This document shows, one piece after another, positions 29,122 through 64,000 of a stretch of 64,000 nt of DNA. Origin of the DNA: Bugula neritina (lineage: Eukaryota > Animalia > Bryozoa). A model generated the notes under the pieces. It was given only the letters and a program-made list of their open reading frames with translations, did no database searches and was not told where the DNA came from. The stretch is taken from positions 4,121,538 through 4,185,537 of the forward strand of contig OZ037772.1 in the NCBI GenBank assembly GCA_964035545.1, written 5' to 3'. Made by a program: the position numbers and the translations under genes. Every line of letters starts with the position of its first letter. Position 1 is the first letter of the stretch.

Positions 29122-29549
29122 TAACATAGTATAAATATTTTAAAACAAAGACAAAGCATATTGTAGTGAGTAGTGCAAAGTACAAATACGGGAATCGCCC
29201 TCTCCCTACTCTTGGAATACTTAGCCCCTTATGTAGCAACCAATTAGCAGCTCCGGAAGATATACTTCCGATTCACGTGACACTTCCCGGGTTATTAACA
29301 TTTTATCACGTTGTTGTAAGCGGAGGCTTGAAGGAGAAACATGTATTAGTAGTTGACTGATGTTTAGGATAATTTGATGTGATGTTTATTTTATGCTTTA
29401 TTGTGGATAATAAATATAATTACTCGACAGCTACCCTAGTAATTACTAGCAGGATAACTAACTAACTATACGCAAGTAGATAACTCACGCACAGTAATTG
29501 CACGAATTACTACAGTGGTGGCAGCAGTGGGATCTTGCGTATAGCAGTC

Positions 29550-30500
29550 ATGGCAGAAGACGGCACGGAGCTACCCATTCCACTGAATGAAGGTGAGAGA
29601 GATAAAGTTGATATACCTGAGGAACCAGTGGTGTTAGATGAAGAAGTGAGAATTCCTAGAGAGCATGGTAAAGACAGATACCGGCTGAAGGCGCCCACCT
29701 TCACAGGCGAAGAAGCAGTGGAGCAGTTTATCCAAGAATTTCAAGATGTGATGGAGATTGCACAGTGGCCACCAAGGGTGGCGTTGCTCAAGCTCAGGAT
29801 GGCGCTGAGAGACAAAGCTAAGCCGTACGGAGCGGGACCTGACATAGACGGAATCTTTGCTTCTCTGCGGGCCCGCTTTGGCATCTCCCCCATAGATGCG
29901 CGGGCCCGTCTACAAAGGATGCGGCGTGATCCTCACACGTCGCTACGAGAGGAAGCTGCCACGGTGTACCCACTAGCGCAGATCGCGTTCCGCGATCTGC
30001 CTCCAGTACACCGTGAGAGGTATACTTATGATGCTTTTGTGCAGTCCATCAACGACTTGGTGCTCCACCATCAATTCCAAGCGAGGGGAGTCACCACGGT
30101 CGAAGATGCACTTGCGGTGGGAGAAGCCTACCTCATGGCGACTCATATGCACCGCAACCGCGTGGCCTCCCGCCAGGTGACCACGGAGCACACTACTGCT
30201 CATGCTGAACCAAACGCGGAACCCTCCGCGGTGGCTAATGTAAACCAGATGTCACTAGCGTCAAAAGTTGCACAGATGACTGACATGCAAGATAAACTGG
30301 TCGCCACATTATCTCCCCCAAGCCAGGTAGATACTGCCCGTGAGCCTTGCGGGCCGCAGGTACAATCACCAGGCATGGGGCACAACTTCTGCTGGGGATG
30401 CGGAAGGCCAGGACATTTCCAGAGGAACTGCCCTCAACTCCCACAAGGGTTAAACTACCACAGCCCGCAGATGTTCCCACCTCCTGCGGGCCGTCTGTGA
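29550..30500 (+). CDS. Element B Gag with an intact CCHC knuckle
   Basis: Starts at ATG MAEDG; capsid-like region YRLKAPTFTGEE..WPPRVALLKL; knuckle CWGCGRPGHFQRNC; closely similar to element C Gag. Confidence 0.92.
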   Translation: MAEDGTELPIPLNEGERDKVDIPEEPVVLDEEVRIPREHGKDRYRLKAPTFTGEEAVEQFIQEFQDVMEIAQWPPRVALLKLRMALRDKAKPYGAGPDIDGIFASLRARFGISPIDARARLQRMRRDPHTSLREEAATVYPLAQIAFRDLPPVHRERYTYDAFVQSINDLVLHHQFQARGVTTVEDALAVGEAYLMATHMHRNRVASRQVTTEHTTAHAEPNAEPSAVANVNQMSLASKVAQMTDMQDKLVATLSPPSQVDTAREPCGPQVQSPGMGHNFCWGCGRPGHFQRNCPQLPQGLNYHSPQMFPPPAGRL

Positions 30501-32794
30501 ATCACCCAGAGAGGCCCGCGCGTCTGTCGCCCCGCTGGGCGCCGCACGGAGATGCTGTGAAGTGGCGACCCCCGCGGCAAGTAGGCTCAAGCCACTCGCC
30601 GCCTGGGTCCTCTACGCCACTCCAACACCAACACGGAGCCGGCAGACGGTTGACCTCAGAGCCTGCGAGGGAAACGGTACAGGCGCCACAAGGCGTACCG
30701 CCCCAACCTCGGCAGCTGGTCAATAGTCGTCGCCAACCGTGGACCCCTCGACCTACAGCGAGGGAGGTGCAACCACGGCACACACAGCTGCAGCTACACG
30801 GAAGTAGCTACTTCCTGCCAGGAAAGCTAGCCGGCAAGCCTGCCAACTTCCTCCTGGACTCAGGCTGCACCACCAACCTCCTTAGCCGTCAATTCTTTGA
30901 CACCCTCAGCGCTAAGGTCAAGGACGGGTTGGCACCGTATGAGGGGGATCATGGCACCCTGGCAGACGGGTCGTGCATTCCCTTCTACGGCATTATTGAG
31001 CTAACTGGTTACGTCCGTAACCAGGCCATCCAAGAGACGTTTATCGTCGGGCAGCTCAACGAGGACGCTATCCTCGGGATGCCATTCTTACAACGACACG
31101 GATGTCGCATCGATTTCAGTAAATCTGCGATGATCATGGGCGACAGGGAGCTCGCTTGTGTCGATAAGTTTGGTCGCCCTCTAGCGGGAGCAGTGCAGGT
31201 GGTACGGAGCTGTACTATACCAGGCCACTCCCGGGCTACCGTCCGCTGCAAGGTAGACGGTGGCCAAACCTCTAAGTTGGGAGTTGTCGAAAGTACGCAC
31301 TCGAGAGTCCAACTTGCCCATAGCTTTAGCCGGCTTACGGGACAAGGAGAGATCTCAGTGCAGTGTGTCAACCCCTCTTCAGAGACAGTAGACCTACCAC
31401 CCAGATCCATGCTGGGCCGCTTCCATCCTGTCCAGGAGGAAGCCATTGGGCCGTCGTCGGGAGCTACGACGGAAGGTCCTCAGCAGAGCCCGTCTCAAGG
31501 GCGGAGGACCGTCCCAACCCACGCCTCCCATCCTCCAGGGACGCGTGGCTGCACAGGCAACAGAAAGCGCCAGGCTATGGCTAGGTTGCCACATGGGTAC
31601 AGTGAGGCGTTCCGCCACACGGACCACGACGCCCGCCTAAATAGAGCAGGCTGTCGTGAGGTACCACGGGCGGCGAAGACCGCCCCTGCTCAGCCACTCC
31701 AACAGTGGGCTGACACGCCCCCGGAGGCTGCCCAGAGCCTCCGCGCCAAACCTGTATGGGCTGGTAACATTAGGGAGCTGCCAAAGCTCCAGGAAAGCCT
31801 TCCTGGGGTGGTAGCCGACGTGTACCGAGCGAAACAGGAAGGGCGACGACGCAGTAGTAAACAAAGGCGACAGGGATGCGCCGAGTTACGGCTGTACTGT
31901 CAACGTTGGAGCTCTCTGCGGGTCGGGCCAGATGGTCTGCTGACCATGACCTTGGCCGCCAACAGCAGACAGCCAGCCAGGAAGAGGGCCGTCTGCCCAG
32001 TTGCCATCCGCCGGAAGTTGATACAAGACACCCACGAGGAGACTCACCGAGGAGTCCAAGGGGTGGTCACCAAGCTACAACTCCGGTGGTACTGGCCCAA
32101 CATGGAGCGGGATATCCGGCGCAGAGTGAGACGGTGCAAAGTTTGCCAGACCAACAAGCATAGCCGTCTCCCTGGTGAAGCAGGGCGGCAGACGCATTGT
32201 GCGAAAAGGTCTCGGCAAGCGGAGACTGTCATCCTGGCCGGAAACACCTCCATGACACGTCAGGAAGACTTGGCGAGGCGAGAAAGGCCACTTCCGTCCT
32301 TGAAAGTGCGCCCACCGCCCCCAACGTCAAGCCTGCCATCACCACCACTTCCGGAACCAGAAACGGGTCCGGAAGTGCAAAAACCCCCCGTGGGAGGGGC
32401 TCCGCAAGGAGATACCAACATAGGAACAAACGTCACAAACAGGCTGGAAAAACCACCCGTGAGACATAACAGTCCACAGGTGAGCACACCGCCTCCCACA
32501 GTGACGACGCCTCCAGGACCACACACTAGGCAACTTCCAGCGTGTCTCAGAGACTGTGTACGTGACCGCGGTATAAGCGGCAGTAACGAAAGTCTAGAGA
32601 AGCCTCGCATGGGAAAACAGGCAAAGAGCCGTGGGAGTTGTGAACACCACGGAAATCTCAACTTTTGCCTCGGCGGAATCTCACACGAGATTCATCCGCT
32701 GGAAGTGAAAAGCCCTAGTCACGTTTCACAACCACGCTGTCCGGTCTTTTCCTACGTTGATGCAGTCAAGAGTAGACGTGCCACTAAACAGTAA
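30347..32794 (+). CDS. Element B internally deleted Pol (protease, RT stub, IN HHCC domain, Pro-rich tail), open throughout
   Basis: Protease FLLDSGCTTNLL is present; there is no YxDD, RNase H or DDE core; HEETH..CKVC is retained. In-frame deletion junctions relative to C and E lie near 31700 and 32255. Confidence 0.9.
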   Translation: MRAAGTITRHGAQLLLGMRKARTFPEELPSTPTRVKLPQPADVPTSCGPSVNHPERPARLSPRWAPHGDAVKWRPPRQVGSSHSPPGSSTPLQHQHGAGRRLTSEPARETVQAPQGVPPQPRQLVNSRRQPWTPRPTAREVQPRHTQLQLHGSSYFLPGKLAGKPANFLLDSGCTTNLLSRQFFDTLSAKVKDGLAPYEGDHGTLADGSCIPFYGIIELTGYVRNQAIQETFIVGQLNEDAILGMPFLQRHGCRIDFSKSAMIMGDRELACVDKFGRPLAGAVQVVRSCTIPGHSRATVRCKVDGGQTSKLGVVESTHSRVQLAHSFSRLTGQGEISVQCVNPSSETVDLPPRSMLGRFHPVQEEAIGPSSGATTEGPQQSPSQGRRTVPTHASHPPGTRGCTGNRKRQAMARLPHGYSEAFRHTDHDARLNRAGCREVPRAAKTAPAQPLQQWADTPPEAAQSLRAKPVWAGNIRELPKLQESLPGVVADVYRAKQEGRRRSSKQRRQGCAELRLYCQRWSSLRVGPDGLLTMTLAANSRQPARKRAVCPVAIRRKLIQDTHEETHRGVQGVVTKLQLRWYWPNMERDIRRRVRRCKVCQTNKHSRLPGEAGRQTHCAKRSRQAETVILAGNTSMTRQEDLARRERPLPSLKVRPPPPTSSLPSPPLPEPETGPEVQKPPVGGAPQGDTNIGTNVTNRLEKPPVRHNSPQVSTPPPTVTTPPGPHTRQLPACLRDCVRDRGISGSNESLEKPRMGKQAKSRGSCEHHGNLNFCLGGISHEIHPLEVKSPSHVSQPRCPVFSYVDAVKSRRATKQ
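30449..30491 (+). promoter_or_regulatory. Putative -1 ribosomal frameshift signal (G_TTA_AAC plus stem-loop), element B
   Basis: The heptamer is in the gag frame, followed by a 7-nt spacer and an 8-bp stem GCCCGCAG/CTGCGGGC. The pol ORF is in the -1 frame and the signal is conserved in element C. Confidence 0.75.
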
Positions 32795-32817
32795 TCATTT
32801 ACCGCTCTCATTCCAAA

Positions 32818-33875
32818 ATGTCTTACTATTCTGGATCGAAGGGTGAGTTAATTATGTTTTTGGTACGATAACTAGACTGCATCAGTCAGCTTCAGCTACA
32901 CTAACTAGCAAGCTGGAGATTCGATAATGATAAACAGTGGTGGGAATACACGTCGACTTTGATTTTAAATAATCTGCCATAGCGAGTGTGTTCTCCATCA
33001 ACTATTCATTAGCCTGAATCTCACGAGTGTAACTGAACAGAGTACCGGTCAGGCTGTACACGCCGACGGTACCTCAGTGTATAATCTTTAACACTGCTAC
33101 TCTTTCAGATCACACTCGAGTGACCACCTCCCGGTCACGGGACCAGCCAACTTCTCTGCCTATGGAAGAGGAACCTGTAATGGAGAATGGCATACCCGTG
33201 GTGCTCTGTCGACGACACCGCTGGGTGTCACCCACGACGGAAAGGAGAATTGAGGAAGCCTGGGGACCCAGCGGACCCCACCGAACCTGCCAGGTCTGCT
33301 TTGAGGAGTGCCCGTCACACCGCTCCCTGCGTCTACATGTAGACGCCCATTTTCTACTCCACTTCTGTCCGTGCAGGTTCCACGACGTATGCCCGTATCC
33401 CGTGACAGTCCATAAGCTGAGCTGCTTCGCTGGAGAGAACCATACTGTCGATGAGGACAGTTTCCCCCAATACCTATATACCATCAAGCCAGTCATCAGG
33501 AAGGCTATCACCCTGGCCGCACTAGCGTCAGGGTTCCACGTACTGCTGCTATCCGCCCGCCATAAGTCCCCTATGGTTCAGGGCCCGTCTCCTACCTCCG
33601 TCAACCCTAGCAACACCCCCGAAGTAGAAAGAACAACAATACCCCCTCTAACAGAGACTACTACAACCCCGCCAAGACCTAGCCAGCTGGCTAATGTAGA
33701 AGAGCGGCTTGTAAGACTACAAGCCGAGTTCACACAACTTGCCCCTGACTTGCTGGATATGACGACAGGTCTATACCAGTTGAAGGACTCAGTGGGGCGA
33801 CTGAAGAGGCGGCTACGTGCCCGACAGGCTCGACACAGAGCACGCTCGCTACAAGAGTCGGAGTCCACCCAATGA
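32818..33875 (+). CDS. Element B ORF3: two-exon C2H2/C2HC zinc-finger and coiled-coil protein (263 aa; exons 32818-32842 and 33109-33875)
   Basis: ATGTCTTACTATTCTGGATCGAAGG|GTGAGT...TCTTTCAG|AT joins in phase 1 to give MSYYSGSKDHTR. Motifs C-x2-C-x12-H-x3-H and C-x-C-x12-H-x3-C, with a C-terminal heptad-like helix. Element C has the same structure. Confidence 0.85.
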
Positions 33876-34844
33876 GTATGCCTGGGGTAGGCACCTTTCG
33901 TTGAGCTGTATTTCGTCTGGAAAGTGACGAGTGCTCCGACATTGGCCCGCGTGCTGGTAAGCACCCTCTCTCTTTATAGCTGATTAGATGTGTGTGATCG
34001 ATCACCCTGTTTACTTCTGTATATAAATGTTGTCGTGCTCAACTATTTCTTTTCTTCCTCTTTGTGGGTTTACTTATGTATGTTTTTCTTCTTGGATTAT
34101 TGTATAGTTTTTCATTATGTGTTTTTTTTATTGTGTTATCAGAAAGTAGGGCTTTCTGCTGGGGGGGGGGCGGTGTAGTGAGTAGTGCAAAGTACAAATA
34201 CGGGAATCGCCCTCTCCCTACTCTTGGAATACTTAGCCCCTTATGTAGCAACCAATTAGCAGCTCCGGAAGATATGCTTCCGATTCACGTGACACTTCCC
34301 GGGTTATTAACATTTTATCACGTTGTTGTAAGCGGAGGCTTGAAGGAGAAACATGTATTAGTAGTTGACTGATGTTTAGGATAATTTGATGTGATGTTTA
34401 TTTTATGCTTTATTGTGGATAATAAATATAATTACTCGACAGCTACCCTAGTAATTACTAGCAGGATAACTAACTAACTATACGCAAGTAGATAACTCAC
34501 GCACAGTAATTGCACGAATTACTACAATATTCTGCATATCATCAACAATGGCTATCAGTAATAAGTACAGCATAATAGATTATTATTATAAATGTATTTA
34601 TACAAATAGTGACAGTAATACTAAAAGTAATATTTTTAGCTATAATTGGTATCCACCAGTTTGCACTACAATTATGAATTTTAAATTACATACAACTTCA
34701 ATTTAAAACTAAAAGTAAGAGTGAAACGCTTAATAGTTATTACTATAACTATGACTATTAAGATTAGTATAATATGGTAAAATGTGAGACTGAGTACCAG
34801 TATAAAACTGATATTTAACCTATTTGTAGATTCTAAACTTTTAA

Positions 34845-35170: not shown

Positions 35171-35763
35171 TGTTATAATTTTCAGATTTAGGGTTGATGT
35201 GCTATCCAGAGAGTCTATTTATTTACTATAAAACTGCACCAGGATAAGTCGAGTGAACGAGTATATTTTACACACAATTATACATTATAAAAACGATACA
35301 TTATTTCCAGACAAGTTACACATCTAATCTATTTCACACTCTAGCTTCGACTGAGTTAGCAGCGGGAAACTACAATTGCTGTTAACTATCAACTACGCTA
35401 ATTGGTTATCCATTGTTCCGGGTCAATTGCGCGACCCTACATGTTGTGCTGCTGGTAGTTCCACGAACCACCACACCGCCCCCACCAGCAGAAAGCCATC
35501 TTTCTGATATATATATAAAAAAAACATTCATTGGTAACCGCATACATCAGTGGACAAAATAATACATAATATACAGGAAGAGACATAATAATAGACAGAA
35601 TCATTATAACGATCCGTTGCATACAATTGGCCAGCTGTAGATAGACGAGGAATACTAGCTAGCTGTGGTGTTAGACAGGGGATAACCTGTTAAGCAGTCA
35701 AACATTTACATGACATCTTGGCTTCTCCCAAGAGGCGGAGTTGGAGTACTCCGGGTAGTCTAA

Positions 35764-36841
35764 CTAGAGTCCTTGTTGGGCACGCCGGTGCTTGGCTTGG
35801 CATGTACGCAGTTTCCTTTTCATACGGCATACGGATCCCTTTAGCTGGAAGAGTCCTGTTGTAGTGTTAAGTAGATCTGGTGCCAGCTGGGTGAACTCTT
35901 CTTGTAATCGTAGGAGGTGTTCTTCTACTGTGGCTAGGCGTACTGGGTCTGGGGACGGTGTCCGTCTGCGGCGCAAGGGTGGACTGGGGGACCTGGTTCG
36001 TCTCTTCGTCAGAGTAGGGGAGATCTCTCCTTCTTCTGGATATGTAGTTTCTTCGGGGGTGTATGTAATTTGAGGGCGGTCAGACACCAACGGAGATTGT
36101 TGGCGGGCGTTGTCTAACACACGTTGGAACCCCGAGGACAGAACGGCTAATAGCATGGCCTTCTTCACCAGAGGTCGTATAAGTGTGAGGAACTCCGGGT
36201 ATAGCTTAGCGTCGACCACGTAGTTTTCTCCAGGGAAACAGCCCGCCGCTCTGTGTCTGGTGACGGGGTAGGGATACACGTCATTGTACCCGCAGGGGCA
36301 GAATGTTAGTAGGAGATGAGCATTGACGTGTAAATTAAGGGAGCAATGAGAGGCGCAGTCTTCACCACAGATCTGGCATCTCGTCCGTCCTCTGGACCCC
36401 CAGGCTGTTTCTATTTCTTCTTCTGTTTGTGGAGACACCCACCGCCAACGGCGGCGTAGTGGCTCAGGCCGGTCACCACTAGCATACTCCTCTGGATACG
36501 GAGCGGGAAGTGTTCTATCCCGTACCCTGGTTGTAGCGGGTCGAGTGTAATCTGAAAAAGTTTCAACAGTGTTAATACAGTACACTGCTGTGTTGTCAGC
36601 TTGAACAGCTTGGCAACTCCTAATTCAGTTACCTCGTAGAGATTTATGGTAGTGAATAGTCAGATAGAACACGTATTGCAATGAGATTATAAAAATCTCT
36701 AAGTCAAACTGAGTTCTTACTACGGTATTTCACTAACCTATCTCCAGCTCGATTGACTCGGTGAGTCAGAGCTGAGCGATGCAATCTAGTTTCGTATTAA
36801 GATATAGTTAACTCACCCCACGATCTGTTGTCGTAAGACAT
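35764..36841 (-). CDS. Element C ORF3: two-exon zinc-finger and coiled-coil protein (270 aa; exons 36817-36841 and 35764-36551)
   Basis: ATGTCTTACGACAACAGATCGTGGG|GTGAGT...TTTTTCAG|AT gives MSYDNRSWDYTR. Motifs CQIC-x12-HVNAH and CPC-x12-H-x4-C, then RRTRSPSPPLRRRRTPSP and the helix RLATVEEHLLRLQEEFTQLAPDLL. Confidence 0.85.
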
Positions 36842-36865
36842 ACTGAATGTGTGAAATGGTTTGAA

Positions 36866-39800
36866 CTACTGCTTAGAAACACGTCTACTCCTGACTGCAT
36901 CAGCGTATGAAAAGATCGAGCAACGTGGTTGGGGTGCGTGATTAAGACTTTGTGCACCCGGCGGATGAATTTTGTTTCTATTTCCGCCGATGCAAAAGTT
37001 GATATTTCCGTGGTGTTGACAACTCCCACATTTGCTCGATTCTTTTCTCGTACGGTTTTCCCCTAGACTTTCATGCGTGCCGCTTTTAACGCAGTCACAT
37101 ACGAAGTCCTTCAAGTATGCGGGGGGTTGCCTCGTACGCTGTCCCCTTTCTAGGGGGGGTGACACGCTTGCCGGTTCGTTAGTAGGGGCCTCTAATGGCG
37201 TCTCTACTTCACCGTCAGCGGTCACCTCTTCTTGTTCTCCGGATGGAGCCCCTCCCTCCGTGGGGGTTTGCACTTCCGGAACCGGCTCGGTTTCTGGAAG
37301 TGATGGAATTAGACTTGGCGGTGGCGGACACGCTTCTGTTGACAAAAGCTGCCGCTCCTCTCTCACCAAGGTTTCTTCCCGCGGTATGACCACTTCGTAT
37401 TCAGGTCCATGCCGCCGTCGCCCGCGCGTTGTTGTCTGCCTCCTGGGCTCTAACAACGGGGGGGCTTCTCCCACTCCGTCGGGGCTAGCCCAATACGGTT
37501 TCAAGCGAGACTCGTTCTGGATAGACACCTGTCCTGAGCGCTCGATCTTGTACGTATGATTGGGCATAGCCTCGACGACCACGTAGGGCCCTACGAACTT
37601 AGGCTTCAGCTTATCAGCCTGTCCGCGGCGCCTACGGTAATTGACCATCCACACCTTATCTCCCATTTGATAGAGAGGTGGTTCATCGGAATCTTCGTGC
37701 CGCACCTTCCACTGCTGTTGGCGCAGTATATCGTGTGCGGCCTTCATCCGTTCCACTAGTTCACTGGCATACTCGTGGACTGAGTTATCTTGCTCTGGAA
37801 CGTGATAGGTGAGATGGTCAGGGACACGAGTCTCTCTCCCGAGCATCAAGAGGTTTGGGGTCTCACCAGTACTGGTGTGTGGGGTGCTACGGTATGCACG
37901 CATGACTTGCGGCAACACCGTATCCCATTCCTCTTGACCTCGTCCAAGGAGGAGACTCCGGAGTGCTTCACCTAGCATCCGGTTGTTGCGCTCCACCACC
38001 CCGTTACCTTGAGGGTGGTAGGGGGTGGTCCTGCTCTGATTTACTCCCCAGAGGTGGCAAAGGTCGCTCATCAGTTGAGACTGGAATTGAGCGCCTTGAT
38101 CAGAGTGTATCTGTTCGGGGAGCCCAAAATAACAGAATACATGTTGGTCTAGTGCCCTGGCCACTGTTGGGGCTGATGCATCTGGGATAGCCAGAGCATC
38201 CGCCCACCTAGTAAAGTGGTCGGTTAGTACTAGGATCCAATTATTGCCTCTGGGGGTCAGGGGCATGGGTCCGACCAGGTCTACAGCGACTACTTGCCAG
38301 GGCCTACCAGCGTATAGCCTCCGCCGTCCTGCTTCACCAGGGGGGCGGCTATGCTTACTGGCCTGGCAGATCTCACACTGTTTGACTCTGAGCCGGACAT
38401 CACGCTCCATTTGTGGCCAATACCACCGAAGTCGTAATTTGGACATCACTCGCTTGACCCCTGCGTGGGCCTGCTTGTGAGTATCCCAAATCAACTCACG
38501 GCGGATGGCTGTGGGGCAGACTACCCTCTTCTTTTCCGGGTGTCTGCCGCTGGCAGCTAGAGAGATGGTTAGCAACCCATCCTGCCCGATCCGCAGCGAG
38601 TCCCAACGCTGACAGTATAGCCGGAATTCGGCGCAACCCTGTCGTATGCGTTCCTCGCTGGGTCGTCGCCCTTCCCTTTTGGCCCGGTATATGTCTGCCA
38701 CGACTCCAGGCAGCTCTTCTTGGAGCTTTTTCAGCTCTCGAACATTACCGGCCAGTACAGGGTTGGCGCGGAGGTTTTGTACATCCTCCGGGGACTCATC
38801 AACTCTTTGCCTGAGTTGACCTTGATCCCAGTCAAACGGTGCTCCGTGGTGAGCCAGCATCTCCAACTCGCATCGCGGGGACCTCCATCCCTCCTCTCGA
38901 TGTTGAGACACTGTTTGCAACCTCCGTCAGGTCGGCGACTCAACCCATCTGCATTGCTGTGTCTCTTGCCCGGTTGATGTTCGATCCGGTATGAGAATTC
39001 AGCTAGGATTTCGAGCCACCGGGCGACCTGACTAGAGGGCTCTGCTCTCCTGCACAACCAGATCAGCGAGGCATGATCCGTACGCAGCCGGAACTTCCTG
39101 CCGTATAGGTATGGTCTGAAGTGCTTCACTGACTTGATTACTGCCAGCAGCTCCTTGCGGGTAGTGCAGTAATTTCGTTCAGCGGGTGAGAGAGACTTGC
39201 TGTAGTAGGCTACTACTACCTCTCGGCCTTCCTGCACTTGTGACAGCACAGCGCCAACATTTTGGTCACTGGCGTCCGTGTCTAGGATGTACTCCAGAGT
39301 GGGGTCTGGGTAGGCCAAGATGGGCGCCGTTAGTAGGCAGCCCTTGAGGCGGTCGAACGCTTCTTGTTCGACTGGAGTCCACTGCCATGTCACTCCCTTT
39401 GCGGTGAGCCGGTTTAACGGCTGGGCTATGCCCGCAAAGTCTGGTATGTATTGCCTGTAATACCCTACCAGCCCCAAGAAAGCCCGGAGTCCGGTCAAGT
39501 CTTGGGGGGTGACCCAGTCTTCTACTGCCCGTACCTTTTCGGGATCCGTTGCCACGCCGTTTCGACCGACAACGTGCCCCAGGTACTTGACCTCCGGCTG
39601 CAATAGAGCGCACTTGGAAGGTTTGAGCTTAAGACCGGCACCTCGGAGTCTCTCGAAAACCTCCTGCAGAGGACTGACATGTGTCTCGAAGTCTGGAGAG
39701 ATTACGATGACATCATCGAGGTAGACCAGCAGTGTCTTCCAATGGAGTCCGCTAAGGACTTGTTCCATCAGCCTCTGGAAGGTGGCTGGGGCGGAGGTTA

Positions 39801-41436
39801 ACCCGAAGGGCAGCACCCTCCACTTCCACAAACCGTCCCGTGTGATAAACGCCGCTTTCTCTTGGGCGTCGGGACTCAGAGGAACCTGCCAATAGCCGCT
39901 TAGCAAGTCTAACGTACTGAAGTACTTGCTGCCGGCTAGGGCGTCCAATGACTCGTCAATACGAGGTAGAGGGTAGGCGTCCTGTATGGTTACGCTATTG
40001 AGTTTGCGGTAGTCCACACAGAACCGCCAACTGCCGTCTTTCTTCCGGACTAGTACGACTGGCGAGCTCCACGCACTATGGGCGGGCTCTATCAGTCCCC
40101 GGTCCAGAAGATCCCGTACTTGTCGGCTAACCTCCTTCTCTTTCTCCGGCCCCAGCCTGCGTGTGGGCTGCCGGACAGGGACTGTCCCTGCAGTCAGCGG
40201 TATTTCGTGTCTGACAATTCCAGTCAGTCCCACGTCATGCTCTCCGCTGCTGAACACATCACCGTAGTCGCGTAGTAACTTAGCCATAGCTTGGCGTTCT
40301 CTGTTACTCGCGCAGCCGCCACTGGCTGTTTCGTATAACTCCCGGAGATGTGTTGGGACTGCCCCTCGTCCCTGAATAGGGCACTGAGGGAGTGCCTCTG
40401 TCGCATCACCCAGCGACGGGCCTACGTCTCCCTCCTGAACAGAGTGAAAACGGCCCAGCATCGACCCAGCCGGGAGCTTGATAGGCTCGGTAAAGGGGTT
40501 GACGCACTGCACTAAGATCTCCCCTTGCTCAGTCAGCTGATTCAGACTGCTGGCAAGTTGGATCTTTTCGTGCGCGCCTTCAACCACCTCGAGTCCAGAG
40601 ATCCGGCTATTATTCACCCTGCAGTGAATGGTAGCCCGGGAGCGGCCTGGTATGATACGGTTGCGTACCACTTGCACACCTCCCACTAAAGGGCGGCCGA
40701 ACTTGTCGACGCAGGCGAGTTCCCGCCCGGACATCATCATTGCAGATCTGCTAAAATCTATGTGACATCCGTGCCGTTTAAGGAACGGCATCCCGAGGAT
40801 AGCATCCTCCTTGAGCTGACTGACGATGAACATCTCTTGGATCGTTTGATCACGGACTCGTCCCGTCAGCTCAATTATACCATAGAAGGGAAGGCACGAC
40901 CCGTCAGCTAGGGTGCCATATTCCCCTTCGTATGCCTCCATCTCGCCCCTGACCCTAGCACTGAGGGTGTCGAAGAGTTGGCGGCTTAAGAGGTTCGTGG
41001 TACAGCCCGAATCAATGAGGAAAGTAACAGCTTTGCCTTCCAGTTTGCCGGGCAAAAAATAGCTGTTCCCATGGGGCTGCACCTGAACTCTCTCTTCAGG
41101 CCTTACTCTCGCAGGGAGTACCTTCCTCGCTTTGGGTCGCGAAGAAGGTCTCTTAGGGCGGTGGTAGGTAGGCCTCGGGGGTGCCGAGGCTAGATTCTCA
41201 GCTACCTTTGTGTGCTCCCATCCAGATTCTTGGACTTGTAGCCTTGTGAATCTGTTGTGAAGGAGCATAGAAAAGGCAGCCGCGGGGCGAAGCCCCTTGC
41301 TGGTCCGTCGTGGCTGTTGCCACTGTTGGTTGCCAGTACGCGGTACCCGTCTGGGTGACCTGCGTTTCTTCTTCCCTGGGGGTTTCATCGTCGGCCCGCG
41401 GAAGGCGGGAACATCTGCGGGCCGCGGTAGTTTAAC
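36866..41436 (-). CDS. Element C Pol (PR-RT-RNase H-IN) with a 1-nt frameshift at ~38877-38880
   Basis: FLIDSGCT, YLDD and DTDAS lie in ORF 38731-41496; HKQAH..CEIC, VDLVGP, HSDQG, VERNN and GPY lie in ORF 36866-38920. The frames join if one base is restored in the G run, by comparison with element E. Confidence 0.92.
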
Positions 41437-42338
41437 CCCTGATTTAGGTAGGGACAGTATCGGCGGAAATGTCCTTGATTTCCGCACTCCCAGCAAAAAC
41501 TGACTGTTTCTCCTTGTGGTGGCGCCGATGGCCGCATGGGCTCAGGGGCGGTACTCACTGGGGTTTGTGGTGTCAGTGTTGCTATCAGCTTGGCTAGCAT
41601 GTCCGTCAATTGAGTGACTTTTGATGCCGTCGCCAACTGAGACACGGCAGCCGCGGCGGGAGTTTCCTCCCCTTGTCCTGCGGCCGTGTCCGCGCGGTCT
41701 ATCTCCACTTGACGGGAGCTCCCGCGACTTTTATGCATTTGATTAGCTAGGAGGTAAGCTTCCCCCTCAGTCAGAGCATCTTCAACGGTGGTGACTCCCC
41801 TAGCTAGAAACTGGTGGTGGAGACCCAGATCATCGACAGATGCTATGAAAGCGTCGAGGGTATACCTCTCGCGGTTGACTGGGGGCAAGTCGCTGTATGC
41901 GATCTGTGCCAGCTTCATGACCGCAGCGGCATGCTCCCGCAGCGGGGTGCGGGGATCACGCCGCAACCTCTGCAATCGGGCCCTGGCATCTGTAGCAGAG
42001 AGGCCAAAGCGGGCCCGCAGAGAAGCAAAGATATTATCAATGTCTACGCCCAGCCCATAGGGCTTGGCTTTGTCCATCAATGCCATTCTAAGCTTCAGCA
42101 AGGCCACCCTAGGGGGCCACTGGGCGACGTCCATTACGTCGCTAAACTCTTGGATAAATTGTTCCACCTCCTCTTCACCCGTGAAGGTGGGCGCCTTTAA
42201 CCGGTAACGGTCCTCAGCTAGTTCTCGCGGAACCCTTCGCTCTTCTACTACATGGTTAACAGGCATTGTCTCTACAGCATTGTCTCTACGCTCACCTTCT
42301 ATTGCCGGTGGTTGAGTTCCAGCATTCTCAGTCTCCAT
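41385..42338 (-). CDS. Element C Gag with CCHC knuckle
   Basis: 317-aa ORF with CWECGNQGHFRRYC; GTTAAAC slippery site at 41430-41436 followed by a GGCCCGC/GCGGGCC stem. Confidence 0.93.
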   Translation of the reverse strand: METENAGTQPPAIEGERRDNAVETMPVNHVVEERRVPRELAEDRYRLKAPTFTGEEEVEQFIQEFSDVMDVAQWPPRVALLKLRMALMDKAKPYGLGVDIDNIFASLRARFGLSATDARARLQRLRRDPRTPLREHAAAVMKLAQIAYSDLPPVNRERYTLDAFIASVDDLGLHHQFLARGVTTVEDALTEGEAYLLANQMHKSRGSSRQVEIDRADTAAGQGEETPAAAAVSQLATASKVTQLTDMLAKLIATLTPQTPVSTAPEPMRPSAPPQGETVSFCWECGNQGHFRRYCPYLNQGLNYRGPQMFPPSAGRR

Positions 42339-45837: not shown

Positions 45838-45993
45838 GTACTAAGTCTATTTTAAGGTCACATCAGGTTTCTAAATCCAATTGCAGCTGCAATTTCTTTC
45901 CAACTTTCAGTGTTTACAGGATAATGTGAGTTTTGGCAGCCTTCGCTGTCGGTATTTTGACCTTGATGAAAATTAGGTGGTGGAGAAATGAAT

Positions 45994-53526: not shown

Positions 53527-54167
53527 CTACACAGGGGTGTAGACAGACAAAACTACACAGTGGTGTAGACAGACTAAACTACATAGGGGTGTAAACAGAC
53601 AAAACTACACAGTGGTGTAGACAGACTAAACTAGACAGGGGTGTAGACAGACTAAACTACGCAGGGGTGTAGACAGAATAAACTACACAGGGGTGTAAAC
53701 AGACAAAACTACACAGTGGTGTAGACAGACTAAACTAGACAGGGGTGTAGACAGACTAAACTACACAGTGGTGTAGACAGACTAAACTACACAGGGGTGT
53801 AAACAGACAAAACTACACAGTGGTGTAGACAGACTAAACTAGACAGGGGTGTAGACAGACTAAACTACATAGGGGTGTAGACAGACTAAACTACACAGTG
53901 ATGTAGACAGACTAAACTACATAGGGGTGTAAACAGACAAAACTACACAGTGGTGTTGACAGACTAAACTAGACAGGGGTGTAGACAGACTAAACTACAT
54001 AGGGGTGTAGACAGACTAAACTACACAGTGGTGTAGACAGACTAAACTACATAGGGATGTAAACAGACAAAACTACACAGTGGTGTAGACAGACTAAACT
54101 AGACAGGGGTGTAGACAGACTAAACTACGCAGGGGTGTAGACAGAATAAACTACGCAGGGGTGTAAA
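53527..54167. repeat. Intronic minisatellite, 26-bp unit, ~24 copies
   Basis: CTACACAG(G/T)GGTGTAGACAGACTAAA head-to-tail with no spacers. Confidence 0.95.
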
Positions 54168-59336: not shown

Positions 59337-59535
59337 AGTGTGAGAATTCCACGCTAGTGACCTGCCACACACAGTGCGTGTGTTGCGAGTGCAAAATATT
59401 ATTAGCAAATGATGTTAGCGTTAAACTTTACTGCTCGCCTACAGACGTTTGTTTTTAAACAGCGTCACCGGGCAAAGTAATTTGGATATTCTAAAAGCGG
59501 AAATGCAAAATATATAAAACTGTTTTAATTCAGCT

Positions 59536-59689
59536 CAGTATATTATGTTATACAGTATATTATGTCATACAGTATATTATGTTATACAGTATACTATGTT
59601 ATACAGTATATTATGTTATACAGTATACTATGTTATACAGAATATTATGTTATACAGTATACTATGTTATACAGTATATTATGTTATAT
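59536..59689. repeat. Minisatellite, 17-bp unit x~9, interrupted by element E
   Basis: CAGTATA(T/C)TATGTTATA repeats end exactly at the LTR TG. Confidence 0.9.
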
Positions 59690-60023
59690 TGTAGTGAGGA
59701 CGTAATACGCGCGTCCCCCAAACCCCTTCAGCCTATCCGAGTGCGTCACGTGATAACCCTCAGCTAGTAGTAGTTTGTCAGTAGAGAGAGCGTACTAACT
59801 AAGCGAAGATGTAATCTCTAATCTGTGTACGTGCTGTATCTTTTATATAATTAGTAGCGAATAAACTTTGGAAACTCTTACTTAAATACTTTATTGATGT
59901 GGATAAATAGACTATAATTACAAGCTAGGAACCCACGCATAGTAATTACACAAATTACTACAGTGGTGGCAGCAGTGGGATTTCTAGCTACTGTATAAGA
60001 ACAATGAGAAGTATTAGAACATC

Positions 60024-60845
60024 ATGGACGAGAGAGTAACTTCAATGGAAGGAGGTGAGCGAAACATTATTATAGGCCCTCTCGGAGCTGGAGAGGAGGT
60101 ATATAGGAACACATTAGAGGTTCCCGTGTTCACGGGCCTCGAGGATGTTGAACAGTTCGTTCAAGAGTTCCGTGAAGTTGCAGCCATTACAAGATGGCCG
60201 CCAAGAGTAACTCTTACGAAACTGCGGATGGCACTGACGGAAGAAGCCAAGCCGTACGGGTGGAAGCCTAGCGTAAACGGGATCATTGCTACACTACGGG
60301 CCCGTTTTGGCATGCCCGTTGCCGTCGCCAAGTCCAGGCTGCGAGGATTACTCCGCAGGACATGTACACCGCTTCCTGACCACGCCACTCTGGTGCAGAG
60401 ACTGGCACGGACCGCGTATAGCGATCTGCCAGAAACACACAGACGGCACTACACATTCGAAGCCTTTGTACAGTCTCTCAACTCTTTGGACTTCCACCAC
60501 CAGTTACAAGCCAAGGGAGTGACCACGATCGAGGCTGCAATCCAGGAGAACAAGGCCTACGCTGGAGCCGAGCAACTCTATAAGACGGAAGAGGCCACTC
60601 CCCAGACCTCTAGGGAACCAGACCATCCGATCCGCATAGCTGCCGCGACCATTCAACCCCCCATAGAGATGGAGATAAGCCGCTTGATGACTAGACTGGG
60701 ACAATTGGTGGCGACGATAACATACAACCACTCAAAGAAGAGTAAGAGGACGGCCGCAAAACCCCCCAGACCTATGATGCGACGCTGGGAAAGCGTCAAC
60801 CAGGGGCACCGCCACCCGAGCGGCTCAGTTGCTACAAGATTATAG
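60024..60845 (+). CDS. Element E Gag-like ORF with a decayed zinc knuckle
   Basis: Aligns with B and C Gag (PVFTGLEDVEQFVQEF..WPPRV..LRARFG), but CWECGNQGH reads RWESVNQGH and the rest is deleted. Confidence 0.85.
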   Translation: MDERVTSMEGGERNIIIGPLGAGEEVYRNTLEVPVFTGLEDVEQFVQEFREVAAITRWPPRVTLTKLRMALTEEAKPYGWKPSVNGIIATLRARFGMPVAVAKSRLRGLLRRTCTPLPDHATLVQRLARTAYSDLPETHRRHYTFEAFVQSLNSLDFHHQLQAKGVTTIEAAIQENKAYAGAEQLYKTEEATPQTSREPDHPIRIAAATIQPPIEMEISRLMTRLGQLVATITYNHSKKSKRTAAKPPRPMMRRWESVNQGHRHPSGSVATRL

Positions 60846-63681
60846 CGACGTGTTCAGCAGTGGGGACCATGACGTCGGCCTGACCACGGCCGTCCGTCAT
60901 GAGATACCGCTAGCTGCAGGGACTACCCCTATTCGGCAGCCCACTAGGAGGCTGGGACCCGAGAAGGAAAAGGAGGTCAGCCAACAAGTCCGGGATCTTT
61001 TGGACCGCGGCCTCATCGAGCCAGCACATAGTGCGTGGAGTTCACCGGTCGTTCTGGTCCGAAAGAAAGACGGTAGTTGGCGGTTCTGTGTGGATTATCG
61101 CAAGCTCAATAGCGTGACCATACAGGACGCCTACCCCTTACCCAGGATCGACGAATCTCTGGACGCCTTAGCCGGCAGCAAGTACTTCAGTACGCTAGAC
61201 TTGTTGAGCGGCTATTGGCAGGTCCCCCTCAGCCCAGACGCCCAGGAGAAGGCGGCGTTCATCACGCGGGACGGCTTATGGAAGTGGAAGGTCCTCCCCT
61301 TCGGACTGACTTCTGCCCCCGCCACGTTCCAGCGGCTCATGGAACAGGTCCTCAGTGGACTCTACTGGAAGACACTGCTAGTATACCTCGACGACGTCAT
61401 CGTGATCTCCCCAGACTTTCAGACACACGTCAGCCGTCTGCGGGAGGTCTTCGATCGACTCCGAGGCGCCAATCTGAAGCTCAAACCCTCCAAGTGCGCT
61501 CTCTTGCAGCCAGAGGTGAAGTACCTGGGGCACGTCGTCGGCCGTCACGGTGTGGTGACGGATCCTGAAAAGGTACGAGCTATAGAAGATTGGGTAGCCC
61601 CCCAGGATTTGACTGGGCTACGGGCTTTCCTGGGGCTGGTAGGGTATTACAGGCAATACATACCAGACTTTGCGGGGGTAGCGCAGCCGTTAAACCGGCT
61701 CACCGCAAAGGGGGTGACCTGGCAGTGGACTCCCGTCGAACAGAGAGCGTTCGACTGCCTCAAGGGCCGCCTGCTGGAGGCCCCTATCCTGGCCTATCCA
61801 GACCCTGCCCTGGAGTACATCCTCGATACTGACGCCAGTGACCAAAATGTCGGCGCTGTGCTGTCCCAGGTGCAGGAGGGCCGCGAAGTAGTCGTGGCCT
61901 ACTACAGTAAGTCTCTCTCGCCCACTGAACGAAATTACCTCACTACCCGAAAGGAATTACTGGCAGTAATCAAGTCAGTGAAGCATTTCAGACCTTATCT
62001 ATACGGCAGGAAGTTCCGCTTGCGGACCGACCACGCCACCTTGATTTGGTTATGTAAGAGAGCAGAACCGTCCAGCCAAGTCGCCCGATGGCTCGAGGTC
62101 CTGGCCGAGTTCTCTTACCGGATCGAGCACCGACCCGGTAAGAAACACGGCAATGCTGATGGACTGAGCCGGCGACCGGACGAGAGGTGTAAACAGTGCC
62201 TCAACATCGAGAAGAGGGACGGAGGTCCTCCAAAATCCGAGTTGAGAGCACTGAACCACTCTGAAACGGAGTATGACTGGGACCAGGGTCAACTCCTACA
62301 GAAGGCCGCTACGCCCCCGGAGGCTATCCAACGCCTCCGTGCCAATCCTGTCTTGGCTGATAACGTTAGGGAGCTACGAAGACTCCAGGAGGACCTCCCT
62401 GGAGTGGTAGCCGACGTATATCGTGCCAAAAAGGAGGGGCGACGACCCAGTAAAGAACAACTGCGACAGGGATGCACCGAGTTACGGTCGTACTGTCAAC
62501 GTTGGGACTCCCTGCGGATCGGGCCAGATGGTCTGCTGACCATCACAGTGGCTGCTCACAACAACCAGTACGGCAGGAAAAGAGTGATCTGCCCAGCCGC
62601 CATACGCCGGGAGTTAGTATGGGACACCCACAAACAGGCCCACGCCGGGGTGAGCAGGGTGCTCTCCAAGCTACAACTCCGGTGGTACTGGCCCGGCATG
62701 GAGCGTGAGGTGCGGCGTAGAGTCAAACAATGCGAAATCTGCCAGGCCAGCAAGCATGGCCGTCTCCCTGGCGAAGCGGGACGGCGTAGGCTATATGCTG
62801 GGAGGCCGTGGCAGGTGGTAGCTATCGACCTAGTCGGACCCATGCCCGTCACCCCCAGAGGAAACAGTTGGATCCTAGTATTAACCGACCACTTTACACG
62901 GTGGGCGGACGCCCTGGCTATTCCAGATGCGTCCGCCCCCACGGTGGCCAGGGTGCTGGACCAAAATGTATTCTGCTATCTTGGACTACCTGAGCAAATA
63001 CATTCGGACCAGGGGGCTCAATTCCAGTCCCAACTGTTGAGCGACCTCTGCCGCCTCTGGGGAGTAAACCAAAGCAGGACCACCCCGTACCATCCTCAGG
63101 GCAACGGGGTGGTGGAACGCAACAACCCCATGTTGGGCGATGCACTGCACAGTCTGCTCCTCGGCCGGGGTCAGGAGGAGTGGGATACGGTACTGCCGCA
63201 AGTCATGCGGGCCTACCGTAGTACACCACACACCAGTACGGGGGAAACCCCTTACCTCCTGATGCCTGGTCGAGAGACGCGAGTGCCTGACCACCTCACA
63301 TACCACATCCCAGAGCAGGACTATACCATCCACGAGTATGCCAGTAAATTGATAGAGGACCTGAGGGCCGCACACGAAATACTTCGGGCGAAGCAGTGGC
63401 AGGTACGGCGAGAGGACTCTCAGGAACCACCTCTCTATCAAACTGGGGACTGGGTGTGGATGGTCAACTACCGTAGGCGTCGAGGACAAGCGGCTAAGCT
63501 CCAGCCTAAGTTTGTGGGACCCTACGTAGTAGTTGAGGCTATGCCCAATCATACGTACAAGTTGGAGCGATCTGGACAGGTCTCTGTCCAGAACGAAGCC
63601 CGCTTGAAACCGTATTGGGCTAGCTCAGGAGCAGCAGGAGCAGCCCCCCCCCGTTGTTGGAGCCCAGGAGGCAGACAGTAA
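60778..63681 (+). CDS. Element E RT-RNase H-integrase ORF (no protease, no ATG of its own; +1 frame relative to gag)
   Basis: The frame opens after the TGA at 60775-60777. YLDD, DTDAS, HKQAH..CEIC, IDLVGP, HSDQG, VER and GPY are all present. The Pro-rich tail continues in other frames after C-run indels at ~63645 and ~63851. Confidence 0.9.
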   Translation, partial: CDAGKASTRGTATRAAQLLQDYSDVFSSGDHDVGLTTAVRHEIPLAAGTTPIRQPTRRLGPEKEKEVSQQVRDLLDRGLIEPAHSAWSSPVVLVRKKDGSWRFCVDYRKLNSVTIQDAYPLPRIDESLDALAGSKYFSTLDLLSGYWQVPLSPDAQEKAAFITRDGLWKWKVLPFGLTSAPATFQRLMEQVLSGLYWKTLLVYLDDVIVISPDFQTHVSRLREVFDRLRGANLKLKPSKCALLQPEVKYLGHVVGRHGVVTDPEKVRAIEDWVAPQDLTGLRAFLGLVGYYRQYIPDFAGVAQPLNRLTAKGVTWQWTPVEQRAFDCLKGRLLEAPILAYPDPALEYILDTDASDQNVGAVLSQVQEGREVVVAYYSKSLSPTERNYLTTRKELLAVIKSVKHFRPYLYGRKFRLRTDHATLIWLCKRAEPSSQVARWLEVLAEFSYRIEHRPGKKHGNADGLSRRPDERCKQCLNIEKRDGGPPKSELRALNHSETEYDWDQGQLLQKAATPPEAIQRLRANPVLADNVRELRRLQEDLPGVVADVYRAKKEGRRPSKEQLRQGCTELRSYCQRWDSLRIGPDGLLTITVAAHNNQYGRKRVICPAAIRRELVWDTHKQAHAGVSRVLSKLQLRWYWPGMEREVRRRVKQCEICQASKHGRLPGEAGRRRLYAGRPWQVVAIDLVGPMPVTPRGNSWILVLTDHFTRWADALAIPDASAPTVARVLDQNVFCYLGLPEQIHSDQGAQFQSQLLSDLCRLWGVNQSRTTPYHPQGNGVVERNNPMLGDALHSLLLGRGQEEWDTVLPQVMRAYRSTPHTSTGETPYLLMPGRETRVPDHLTYHIPEQDYTIHEYASKLIEDLRAAHEILRAKQWQVRREDSQEPPLYQTGDWVWMVNYRRRRGQAAKLQPKFVGPYVVVEAMPNHTYKLERSGQVSVQNEARLKPYWASSGAAGAAPPRCWSPGGRQ

Positions 63682-64000
63682 CGCGCGGGCGGCAACGGCA
63701 CGGACCAGAATACGAAGTGGTTGTGCCGCGGGGAGAGGACTTGGTGAGGCAGGAGACGCCACTCCCACCAACGGAAGTGCGCCTACCGCCCCCAGTACCA
63801 AGTCTACCCCCACCACTTCCGGTTCCGCATCCGCGTCCGGAAGTGCAAAACCCCCCCCCGTGGGAGGGGCTCCATCTGGAGACAACAGCGGAGAGGGGAA
63901 CACCACCACCAACGGCGGGCCAGAAACACCACAGGTGGAGCAAAATAGCCCACCAGTGAGTACGCCGCCCCAACCAACAGCTACAACTCCCTCTCCAGCT

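Follow-up and report, generated by a model that had tools for sequence, protein, structure and literature searches.

Among the described systems closest to the locus studied here, RLG_Sabrina_SA and RLG_WHAM of wheat encode GAG and protease only and depend on RLG_Wilma; they reach very high copy numbers, and their partner was identified from co-varying populations (PMC9744471). In maize, Cinful/Zeon and 25 maize families place GAG and POL on separate copies; the members of a pair are subtypes of a single family whose LTRs have been homogenised, and complete copies make up fewer than 1% (PMC8547701). Mouse IAP 1-delta-1, a subtype of recent origin, is a betaretrovirus-like ERV that carries a single 1.9-kb deletion in gag-pol (PMC6466679). 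The barley Copia element BARE2, as summarised in PMC9744471, keeps pol, is without GAG and relies on the protein of its relative BARE1.

A sequence-only reading of a 64,000-nucleotide stretch of Bugula neritina DNA (the window) had proposed that two of its elements, B and E, carry complementary halves of one Gypsy genome and replicate by complementing each other, a third element, C, being their complete relative. Our analysis points to a different relationship. We consider it probable that B is a recent copy belonging to an old 'semi-autonomous' sublineage within a bryozoan Ty3/Gypsy clade that parasitises autonomous relatives, and that E is a defective copy of such a relative.

Element B (29162–34526, forward strand, as are all its features) is bounded by the target-site duplication ATAT (29158–29161 and 34527–34530) and by LTRs of 353 bp (29162–29514 and 34174–34526) that run from TGTAGTGAG to AATTACTACA. 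As claimed, the LTRs differ at one site (LTR position 103), and this single mismatch together with the duplication identifies B as a young, properly integrated copy. A 19-nt PBS (29515–29533) precedes gag (29550–30500; 316 amino acids counted from the first ATG), which has a CCHC knuckle at ~30390–30431. The −1 frameshift signal (30449–30491), which is common to B, C and the metagenome relatives L001 and L006, consists of GUUAAAC (30449–30455), a 7-nt spacer and a GC-rich hairpin (~30463–30491). ORF2, in the −1 frame (30344–32794), is stop-free over its 816 codons and encodes, in order, a protease with DSG kept (~30818–31096), the PR-RT linker or 'stub', junction 1, the RH tail plus IN H2C2 finger (~31997–32164), junction 2 and a C-terminal tail. 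Relative to C, RT and RNase H have been lost in-frame at junction 1 (31691–31699; ~1.35 kb), and the integrase core and SH3-like domain have been lost in-frame at junction 2 (approximately 32255–32330; ~0.86 kb), close to the ~1.4 and ~0.9 kb proposed earlier. ORF3 (a 280-codon open frame, 33033–33875, first ATG 33162) encodes a C2H2-like finger and a basic helical C-terminus; it has 49% identity to ORF3 of C and no Pfam match. The polypurine tract region (34149–34173) is close to identical in C. A domain search of B returned gag with CCHC, protease and the integrase H2C2 finger, and no RVT_1, RNase H or rve match, so that the anatomy originally described for B stands.

The two deletions are not peculiar to this copy. 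Searches of protein and metagenome collections yielded a second copy, L001, which has 95% nucleotide identity to B (the closest among the metagenome relatives) and carries both junctions in a different flank, and ten further proteins with the same two junctions at 50–63% amino acid identity; junctions 1 and 2 recur in P0002, P0003, P0004, P0005, P0006, P0008, P0009, P0012 and P0016. The relatives are Bugula neritina metagenome contigs of 2–18 kb, probably from a related population or species and not from the source genome. All 11 RT-less sequences formed one clade (SH-aLRT 98 in the PR tree and 97 in the IN-finger tree), with no RT-bearing member inside it in either tree and with synonymous divergence reaching pS 0.35–0.53 within it. 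Pairwise dN/dS in this clade, which for genomic copies blends selection with post-insertion decay, was 0.22–0.30 for gag, 0.03–0.30 for PR and 0.32–0.55 for the stub; for the IN finger its median was ~0.4, as against 0.06–0.27 in RT-bearing relatives. Every RT-less member covering them retained the DSG motif and the H2C2 ligands. LTR relatives of B were found at 94% (L001), 77% (L002) and 72% (L009). These comparisons indicate that gag and protease of B's lineage are under purifying selection, and that the lineage is old, monophyletic and RT-less, with its own LTRs and the same two in-frame deletions. The shared junctions, the single clade, the different flank of L001 and the constraint on gag and PR also bear out the proposal that B transposed in deleted form, and show it to represent a non-autonomous lineage that propagates and is still mobile.

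Element E (59690 to the window end, forward strand) adjoins nine copies of a 17-bp tandem repeat (59536–59688), the source of the ATAT found at its 5′ side. Its 5′ LTR (59690–59962, 273 bp) is assigned from TG...CA ends, the neighbouring PBS (59963–59981) and a 52-nt similarity to the U5 end of B, the 'LTR' call resting on a single copy because a second copy is absent from the window. Gag (60024–60845; 273 amino acids) is stop-free over 275 codons and ends in a junction (60805–60822) that joins the knuckle to the pre-RT region, with ~1.2 kb missing relative to C. The deletion was correctly described as removing the frameshift signal and protease (and also removes the linker) while sparing RT, RNase H and IN, but the knuckle is not wholly lost: the first half is still there, although substitutions have removed both first Cys, and it breaks off after GH. 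The following open frame (60778–63678; 967 codons, the first ATG being codon 188) contains RT (~61057–61536, RVT_1), RNase H (61726–62112), H2C2 (62593–62757), the integrase core (62803–63096, rve) and an SH3-like C-terminal domain (63445–63567). Relative to gag this pol frame lies at +1; no start codon precedes RT, and there is neither a slippery site nor, in the gag overlap, the frameshift signal. The −1 mechanism of the clade cannot yield a Gag-Pol from it. The integrase tail is broken as well (63640–63681): at ~63644 E differs from C in length by 2 nt, and the frame then stops at 63678, past which homology resumes in another frame up to the window end. E is cut off there, and its visible part is without ORF3, PPT, 3′ LTR or 3′ TSD.

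Among 5.8 billion proteins, no match to E-type gag exceeded 66% identity and none to E-type pol exceeded 84%, and no collection searched yielded a second copy of E. Other deletion copies of the one-off kind were common (L003, P0035 and element D). The parts of B and E said to be redundant are indeed free of stops (B ORF2 and E gag), but E gag is not relaxed: its pN/pS was 0.31, compared with 0.30 for L003–L005, an ordinary constraint consistent with a functional ancestor in the recent past. E is best read as a single defective copy of an autonomous relative and not as a co-adapted second half, although the loss of knuckle Cys in an otherwise stop-free E may be a sign that, once the deletion had arisen, E-type elements went on replicating for a while. 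With E read as a single broken copy, the idea of two halves of one genome loses its support.

Element C (35171–42674, reverse strand) is full-length, as had been stated, with LTRs of ~305 bp that differ at 3 sites, the TSD ATAG, gag, GUUAAAC (41436–41430), a PR-RT-RH frame (41541–38734), IN in a separate frame (38926–36869) and ORF3 (36624–35767). C is no longer intact, however: within 38859–38924 its length is off by a net one base, which puts IN in another frame.

Comparison of the three elements gave different affinities for different parts. Over a 546-nt RH-tail/IN-finger stretch, nucleotide identity was 76.2% for B and E, 74.9% for C and E and 72.0% for B and C; third codon positions in this stretch agreed at 45 sites for B and E, 26 for B and C and 16 for C and E; and the 29-mer offered as an example is indeed identical in B and E and differs at 6 positions in C. 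The asserted closeness of B and E held for these nucleotides only: at the protein level C and E are the closest pair in the finger, and in gag (the largest overlap) B has 65% amino acid identity to C and 41% to E, the gag tree joining B to C and not to the E subgroup (support 99). A DNA tree of the shared region placed the RT-less clade with E, L005 and L008, and C and L007 outside; with values of 85/91, we regard the support for this placement as moderate. The same division is seen in the LTR-end hairpin GTAATT-N-AATTAC(T/A)ACA. B and E are identical in the LTR start, the LTR end and the PBS, and have ATAT beside them, all as reported. That C matches none of these was true of its LTR termini, which differ at both ends, and overstated otherwise, its PBS agreeing at 17 of 19 positions (B and E have the variant CAG rather than CGG), its TSD being ATAG and its PPT region being nearly that of B. 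The PBS itself is generic, recurring in unrelated retrotransposons (27 unrelated metagenome contigs). Overall the LTRs of B and E are ~58% alike, scoring z ~7.6 against shuffles (~5.3 for both B-C and E-C).

On the reading we favour, two in-frame deletions that arose once in the sublineage would have removed RT/RNase H and the integrase core, and the sublineage would since have split into several families with LTRs of their own. It retains gag, the −1 frameshift signal, a protease bearing its active site, the integrase zinc finger and ORF3. B RNA would yield Gag and, through GUUAAAC and the hairpin, a Gag-PR-finger fusion, which together would assemble and mature particles around that RNA. RT, RNase H and integrase would be supplied in trans by a co-expressed autonomous relative that uses the same host tRNA for priming and recognises the same LTR ends, most likely a member of the subgroup including E, L005 and L008, and integration would produce the 4-bp duplication at ATA(T/G)-like sites. 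The likeness of B and E in LTR termini, PBS and synonymous sites would then reflect common subgroup ancestry and probably a helper-parasite tie with intact kin of E. L005 has the LTR-end hairpin plus PR, RT, RH and IN; L005 and L008 carry PR, RT and IN yet are decayed, the L008 contig has no LTR, and we saw no intact helper with B/E-type termini.

The grouping of B gag with C means that the helper may instead be C-like, or that the B lineage is a mosaic. A C-type autonomous helper, with B otherwise as above, would fit the gag identity, the nearly identical PPT region and the presence of C itself, young by its LTRs and at an ATA-type site 640 bp from B. We nevertheless think a C-type helper unlikely, given LTR termini unlike B's at both ends, a PBS differing at 2 positions, a pol-derived region that places B away from C, and the frame break ahead of IN in this copy. 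Far less probable still is the proposal that B-type elements (Gag, protease) and E-type elements (RT, RNase H, integrase) are co-adapted lineages in mutual complementation, an animal counterpart of Cinful/Zeon. Their coding capacities are complementary, their LTR termini are identical over 9–10 nt, and the PBS variant, the ATAT flank and the third codon positions unite them; E has lost knuckle Cys with its frames otherwise open, B is young with no intact helper visible within the window, and such systems are known in maize (PMC8547701). Against this stand the lack of a second E-type copy, a pol that is out of frame with gag and broken in its IN tail, and a normally constrained E gag. Gags only 41% identical make co-assembly doubtful; the LTRs have not been homogenised, unlike those of Cinful/Zeon-type pairs, whose members are subtypes of a single family; the PBS is generic; and the LTR-end hairpin is common to relatives that carry PR, RT and IN, L005 included. 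As the searches covered protein and metagenome collections, we regard the bipartite idea as weakened rather than refuted.

We give equally little credence to the suggestion that the E junction and the C and E frame breaks are assembly or sequencing artefacts (repeat collapse, indel errors) and that E and C are really intact autonomous elements. The breaks are 1–2 nt length differences of the kind that long-read assemblies produce, and the region is dense in repeats, but the gag and RT sides of E meet at one point, on either side of which the element-specific sequence runs on without interruption, its knuckle remnant is substituted and not merely truncated, and similar deletion copies occur in independent assemblies.

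The maize Cinful/Zeon pairs embody the bipartite idea itself, in that the proteins needed for transposition are encoded by different copies; unlike them, B and E differ in their LTRs and gags, E keeps a gag of its own, one E copy is known, and relatives with PR, RT and IN share the LTR-end motif. BARE2, as summarised in PMC9744471, is an element type that is missing a single function and borrows a relative's protein; it would be a parallel for E, were E functional, rather than for B. Like B, mouse IAP 1-delta-1 is non-autonomous, arose by deletion in an animal host and has an ORF fused in-frame over the deleted part; it is mobilised in trans and is more active than its full-length kin (PMC6466679); the B lineage differs in having two deletions, whole gag and protease, and deep diversification. 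RLG_Sabrina_SA and RLG_WHAM share with the B lineage GAG and protease without RT or integrase, long persistence and diversification, and reliance on an autonomous partner with which only short motifs are shared (PMC9744471). They belong to a plant and have very high copy numbers and a known partner, whereas the B lineage belongs to a bryozoan animal, has a predicted helper only, and, unlike the wheat families, retains an integrase zinc finger, in frame, together with a C-terminal tail and a third ORF. The wheat GAG-protease Gypsy families provide a precedent for a semi-autonomous lineage of the B type (PMC9744471).

Self-comparison of the window revealed five LTR elements, three of which (B, C and E) are related to one another. 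B (29162–34526, plus strand) has 353-bp LTRs that differ at a single position, with TG...CA ends and an ATAT TSD on both sides, and integrated recently. The LTRs of C (35171–42674, minus strand) are about 305 bp long, with three mismatches between them, and its TSD is ATAG. E (plus strand) runs from 59690 to the window end at 64000, with only its 5′ LTR in view and its 3′ part beyond the window. The direct TG...CA LTRs and 4–5 bp target duplications of B and C, together with a PBS adjoining the 5′ LTR and a PPT adjoining the 3′ LTR, are those of Ty3/Gypsy elements, and the interiors of all three elements are 52–60% G+C versus 30–37% in the background. The Gypsy order gag–PR–RT–RNase H–IN is present in C and in a more distant metagenome relative (L006), and E carries RT–RNase H–IN. 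The two other elements are also Gypsy. Element A (19291–23956, minus strand), of a different type, has 144-bp LTRs that are 97.9% identical and an uninterrupted 1320-aa gag-PR-RT-RH-IN ORF, making it the sole window element with an intact polyprotein. Element D (46885–51844; 4.96 kb) has LTRs of about 285 bp that are 96% identical, a 511-aa gag-PR ORF and a 518-aa partial RT-RH-H2C2 ORF, with no match to the integrase core; D is a further internally deleted copy, and deletions therefore affect three of the window's five LTR elements. The window also holds tandem arrays at 53527–54165 (26 bp × 24.6), 45993–46190 (25 bp × 8), 45419–45607 (33 bp × 5.7) and 59536–59688 (17 bp × 9), the last of which directly abuts the 5′ LTR of E.

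Pfam searches bore out the domain assignments of the sequence-only reading. B encodes gag with a CCHC knuckle, an aspartyl protease and the H2C2 finger of integrase, and lacks RT, RNase H and the integrase core; C encodes PR, RT, RNase H, H2C2, the core and an SH3-like domain; and E encodes RT, RNase H, H2C2, the core and the SH3-like domain, with the protease absent. Relative to C, about 1.35 kb and about 0.86 kb are missing from B and about 1.2 kb from E. Because both deletions in B are in frame, its ORF2 remains open for 816 codons. B also retains the gag-pol signal (GUUAAAC, a 7-nt spacer and a GC-rich hairpin), as do C, the distant L006 and the B-family locus L001. With its RT and integrase catalytic domains gone and its LTRs, PBS and PPT retained, B has the structure of a semi-autonomous element.

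B belongs to a lineage that shares its deletions. L001, a second copy of the B family, is 95% identical to B over 3.3 kb at the nucleotide level, with both junctions, intact frames and a different flank. In ten further proteins that are 50–63% identical to B ORF2, the pre-RT region is joined straight to the RNase H tail (junction 1), and in those long enough to tell, the start of the integrase core is joined to the C-terminal tail (junction 2) at the same positions as in B. In all, the junctions of B recur in five metagenome loci (L001, L002, L009, L010 and L011) and in proteins of the P0002–P0016 set, although at junction 1 B and L001 are short of about 30 more residues than the other RT-less members. 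The 11 RT-less sequences were monophyletic in a tree of the protease and linker (SH-aLRT 98), in which the clade also held two proteins of unknown architecture and zero RT-bearing sequences, and a tree of the finger region gave the same split between RT-less and RT-bearing sequences (97). Within the RT-less clade pS reached 0.35–0.53, and the lineage therefore covers much of the divergence found across the entire Bugula clade. The lineage also owns its LTRs, which are 94% (L001), 77% (L002) and 72% (L009) identical to those of B. The 5′ flank of L001 (positions 1–151) contains, some 30 bp away from the LTR, a B-type PPT and LTR start in reverse-complement orientation, which may represent either a second copy in head-to-head orientation or a chimera of the metagenome assembly.

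Constraint has been maintained in coding regions that the RT-less lineage kept. The purifying selection expected of gag and protease was found, with dN/dS of 0.22–0.30 for gag and 0.03–0.30 for the protease, and the protease DSG motif and the four zinc ligands of the finger were retained in all RT-less members covering those sites. The linker stub that remains between protease and the former RT gave 0.32–0.55, the finger about 0.4 (0.11–0.84) as compared with 0.06–0.27 in RT-bearing relatives, and the C-terminal tail appeared neutral; these are pairwise values from genomic copies, in which decay dilutes the signal.

The relatives of B, C and E found by protein searches were almost confined to two JGI samples, whose records are prefixed AY690838, under which GenBank lists the mitochondrial genome of Bugula neritina, and one of the relative-bearing contigs also carries a metazoan CC2D1-type gene; the host is accordingly taken to be a bryozoan, Bugula or a close relative. 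All the relatives are metagenome contigs of short length that probably derive from a related population, and the source genome itself lay outside the searches. A metagenome scan with the B/E LTR end plus the PBS gave 0 matches and likewise missed L001's own sequence, and because of that miss the scanned collection must have been without Bugula samples. An exact look-up of the B gag product in public assemblies returned no record, and a search of a library of representatives at 50% identity gave mainly fragments without context, several of which cross a B junction. From another sample, L006 (ENA assembly ERZ27264286) is a complete relative. Its LTRs are about 96% identical, and it has the same PBS, gag with CCHC and the GUUAAAC signal; PR, RT, RH and IN lie in one ORF of 1676 aa, with 72% identity to the pol of E. 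L006 shows the intact architecture of the wider clade.

The fixation of junctions across independent copies that held for B was not seen for E among the sequences searched. Among E-like gag proteins of the metagenome relatives, with the source genome outside the search, we found no fusion of gag to RT. With the same scope, no protein matched E gag at more than 52% identity over its full length or 66% over part of it, and nothing matched E pol at more than 84%. One-off deletions are common in the clade, because two of its other members each carry a different one: in P0035, an E-like gag protein, the knuckle is fused to mid-protease, and in L003 (9900–13450) mid-RT is joined to the C-terminal part of integrase; element D is a further example. 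The pol frame of E lies at +1 to gag and opens only 65 nt ahead of the gag stop, GUUAAAC is absent from the overlap, and the first ATG is 187 codons in. The frame ends at 63678, after a 2-nt length difference at about 63644, and the tail homology goes on in another frame. Over 967 codons this frame has a dN/dS of 0.05–0.10 relative to C, with dS near 1, which reflects selection in the functional ancestors of E, and the absence of stops shows only the youth of the copy. From these searches and sequence features, E looks like a single defective copy.

The gag of E calls for separate comment. The sequence-only reading had taken its knuckle as lost, but half of it remains (60780–60822), with the W and GH kept and both first cysteines replaced by R and S. 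That loss of cysteines, without other decay or stops, is unexplained and leans toward the earlier proposal; it could mean that a protease-less form replicated for a while. We rejected the idea that the diverged gag is a redundant and therefore relaxed part, as pN/pS between E and L003 (0.31) equals that between L003 and L005 (0.30). E gag simply represents a distinct gag lineage. We also considered whether E might be a recombinant that joined a foreign gag (38–42% identical to C) to a C-like pol (92% identical in RT). This was unnecessary because dS between E and C is saturated in pol too (about 1), RT being simply conserved. The relatives of E in gag, L003 and L005, are likewise close to E in pol.

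The greater closeness of B to E than of either to C held only in part. In the nucleotides of a 546-nt stretch spanning the RNase H tail and finger, identity was 76.2% for B and E, 72.0% for B and C and 74.9% for C and E, with the B–E excess at third codon positions; in gag the relation was reversed (65% for B and C, 41% for B and E). Trees agreed with this split: a DNA tree of the shared region placed the RT-less clade with E, L005 and L008, leaving C and L007 outside (85/91), whereas the gag tree grouped the RT-less clade with C (99). The LTR ends follow the first pattern. A hairpin, GTAATT-N-AATTAC(T/A)ACA, ends the LTRs of B, L001, E, L002 and L009 and also of L005, an element with PR, RT, RNase H and IN, while the LTR end in C and L007 is ATTATAACA. 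The conflict between gag on the one side and the RNase H tail, finger and LTR-end motif on the other thus implies that modules were exchanged between lineages, as happens to co-packaged retroelement RNAs, and it suggests past recombination of this kind among B, C, E and the loci L001–L009.

Other cis features proved less particular to B and E. The 19-nt PBS occurs throughout the clade, usually in a CGG form, with CAG in B and E and GGG in C; the CAG variant also occurs in L019 and L035. The same PBS following an LTR-like ACA was present in 27 contigs (L012–L038) from many unrelated metagenome samples, some groups of which had identical LTR ends. For most of these contigs no similarity to proteins of B, C or E could be detected, and the few matches obtained were distant (25–47% at the amino-acid level). 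The PBS is generic, a site for a host tRNA whose widely conserved 3′ end evidently primes many unrelated LTR elements. The primer is presumably tRNA-Leu; neither ARAGORN nor Rfam returned a usable match for it. The tetramer ATAT makes up 1.2% of background 4-mers, and this frequency together with the ATAG of C points to a clade-wide target preference, not one specific to B and E. Nor does C match none of the B/E features, as had been stated: compared with B it agrees at 17 of 19 PBS positions and three of four TSD positions and almost completely in the PPT region.

C, too, is not intact, contrary to the earlier description of it as complete. A net one-base length difference within 38859–38924 shifts its integrase frame off that of RT and RNase H, at a site where the frame is unbroken in E, B and L006; relative to E, this difference is either a mutation in a young copy (the LTRs of C are 99% identical) or an assembly indel. 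Downstream of pol, ORF3 (33033–33875 in B; 35767–36624, minus strand, in C, where the early ATG is absent) is 49% identical between B and C at the amino-acid level and persists as remnants in L002, L007 and L008. It encodes a C2H2-like zinc-finger motif and a basic, helical C terminus. It had no Pfam match and neither a strong hydrophobic segment nor a clear transmembrane segment (maximum Kyte-Doolittle 19-residue mean, 1.56). Judged by these properties ORF3 is not env-like, lacking the membrane glycoprotein of env-bearing Gypsy elements.

The sequence-only reading had proposed that B and E are complementary halves of one Gypsy genome that replicate by mutual complementation, like a segmented virus. 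Their domain contents are indeed complementary by Pfam; E nonetheless carries a gag of its own, as well as a pol that is broken and not in frame. Complementary deletions in neighbors, a common PBS and common LTR tips are expected within one clade and alone are no sign of partnership. A single homogenized LTR family, as a bipartite element of the Cinful/Zeon type would have, is contradicted by the LTRs themselves, which are 353 bp in B and 273 bp in E and about 58% alike, scarcely above the likeness of either to C; the B–E match is confined to a 9-nt start and roughly the last 30 nt (52 nt counting the PBS). Nor are both subtypes multi-copy with fixed junctions: this was true of B but not of E, for which no E-type gag exceeded 66% identity in searches that had the source genome outside their scope. 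Moreover, an element with PR, RT and IN and the B/E LTR-end motif exists among the relatives: L005, with an LTR end one base off the B/E type, has all three, in decayed form. We consider it highly improbable that a protease-less E type propagates as a lineage in an obligate two-component Gypsy with the Gag–PR lineage of B, its pol being expressed by a +1 or re-initiation route and matured by the protease of B, which would make the pair the first animal counterpart of Cinful/Zeon.

Our preferred reading is instead that B is semi-autonomous. B would make its own Gag and a Gag–PR–finger fusion, while an autonomous relative would supply RT, RNase H and integrase. Given the match in LTR termini, this helper most likely belongs to the E subgroup, and E would be a damaged copy of such a relative. 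The architecture, the lineage, the selection and the recent integration of B are shown by the sequences, whereas we infer this source of the enzymes, the co-assembly of particles and any role of the retained finger. Why a parasitic element that lost the catalytic core of integrase should retain the zinc finger, in frame and partly constrained, is a question that the lineage raises; the finger may, for example, dock onto the integrase or Gag-Pol of the helper.

Semi-autonomous GAG–protease LTR retrotransposons that coevolve with helpers are known mainly from cereal genomes, and a deep, selected bryozoan lineage of this kind would extend the strategy to animals. B fits the type of the wheat elements RLG_Sabrina_SA and RLG_WHAM, whose coding capacity is limited to GAG and protease and which rely on RLG_Wilma, an autonomous element (PMC9744471), and it also recalls IAP 1-delta-1 of mice, a fusion-ORF derivative (PMC6466679). 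A real bipartite precedent is provided by Cinful/Zeon of maize, in which complete copies are nearly absent and the partners share one LTR family, a test that B and E fail (PMC8547701).
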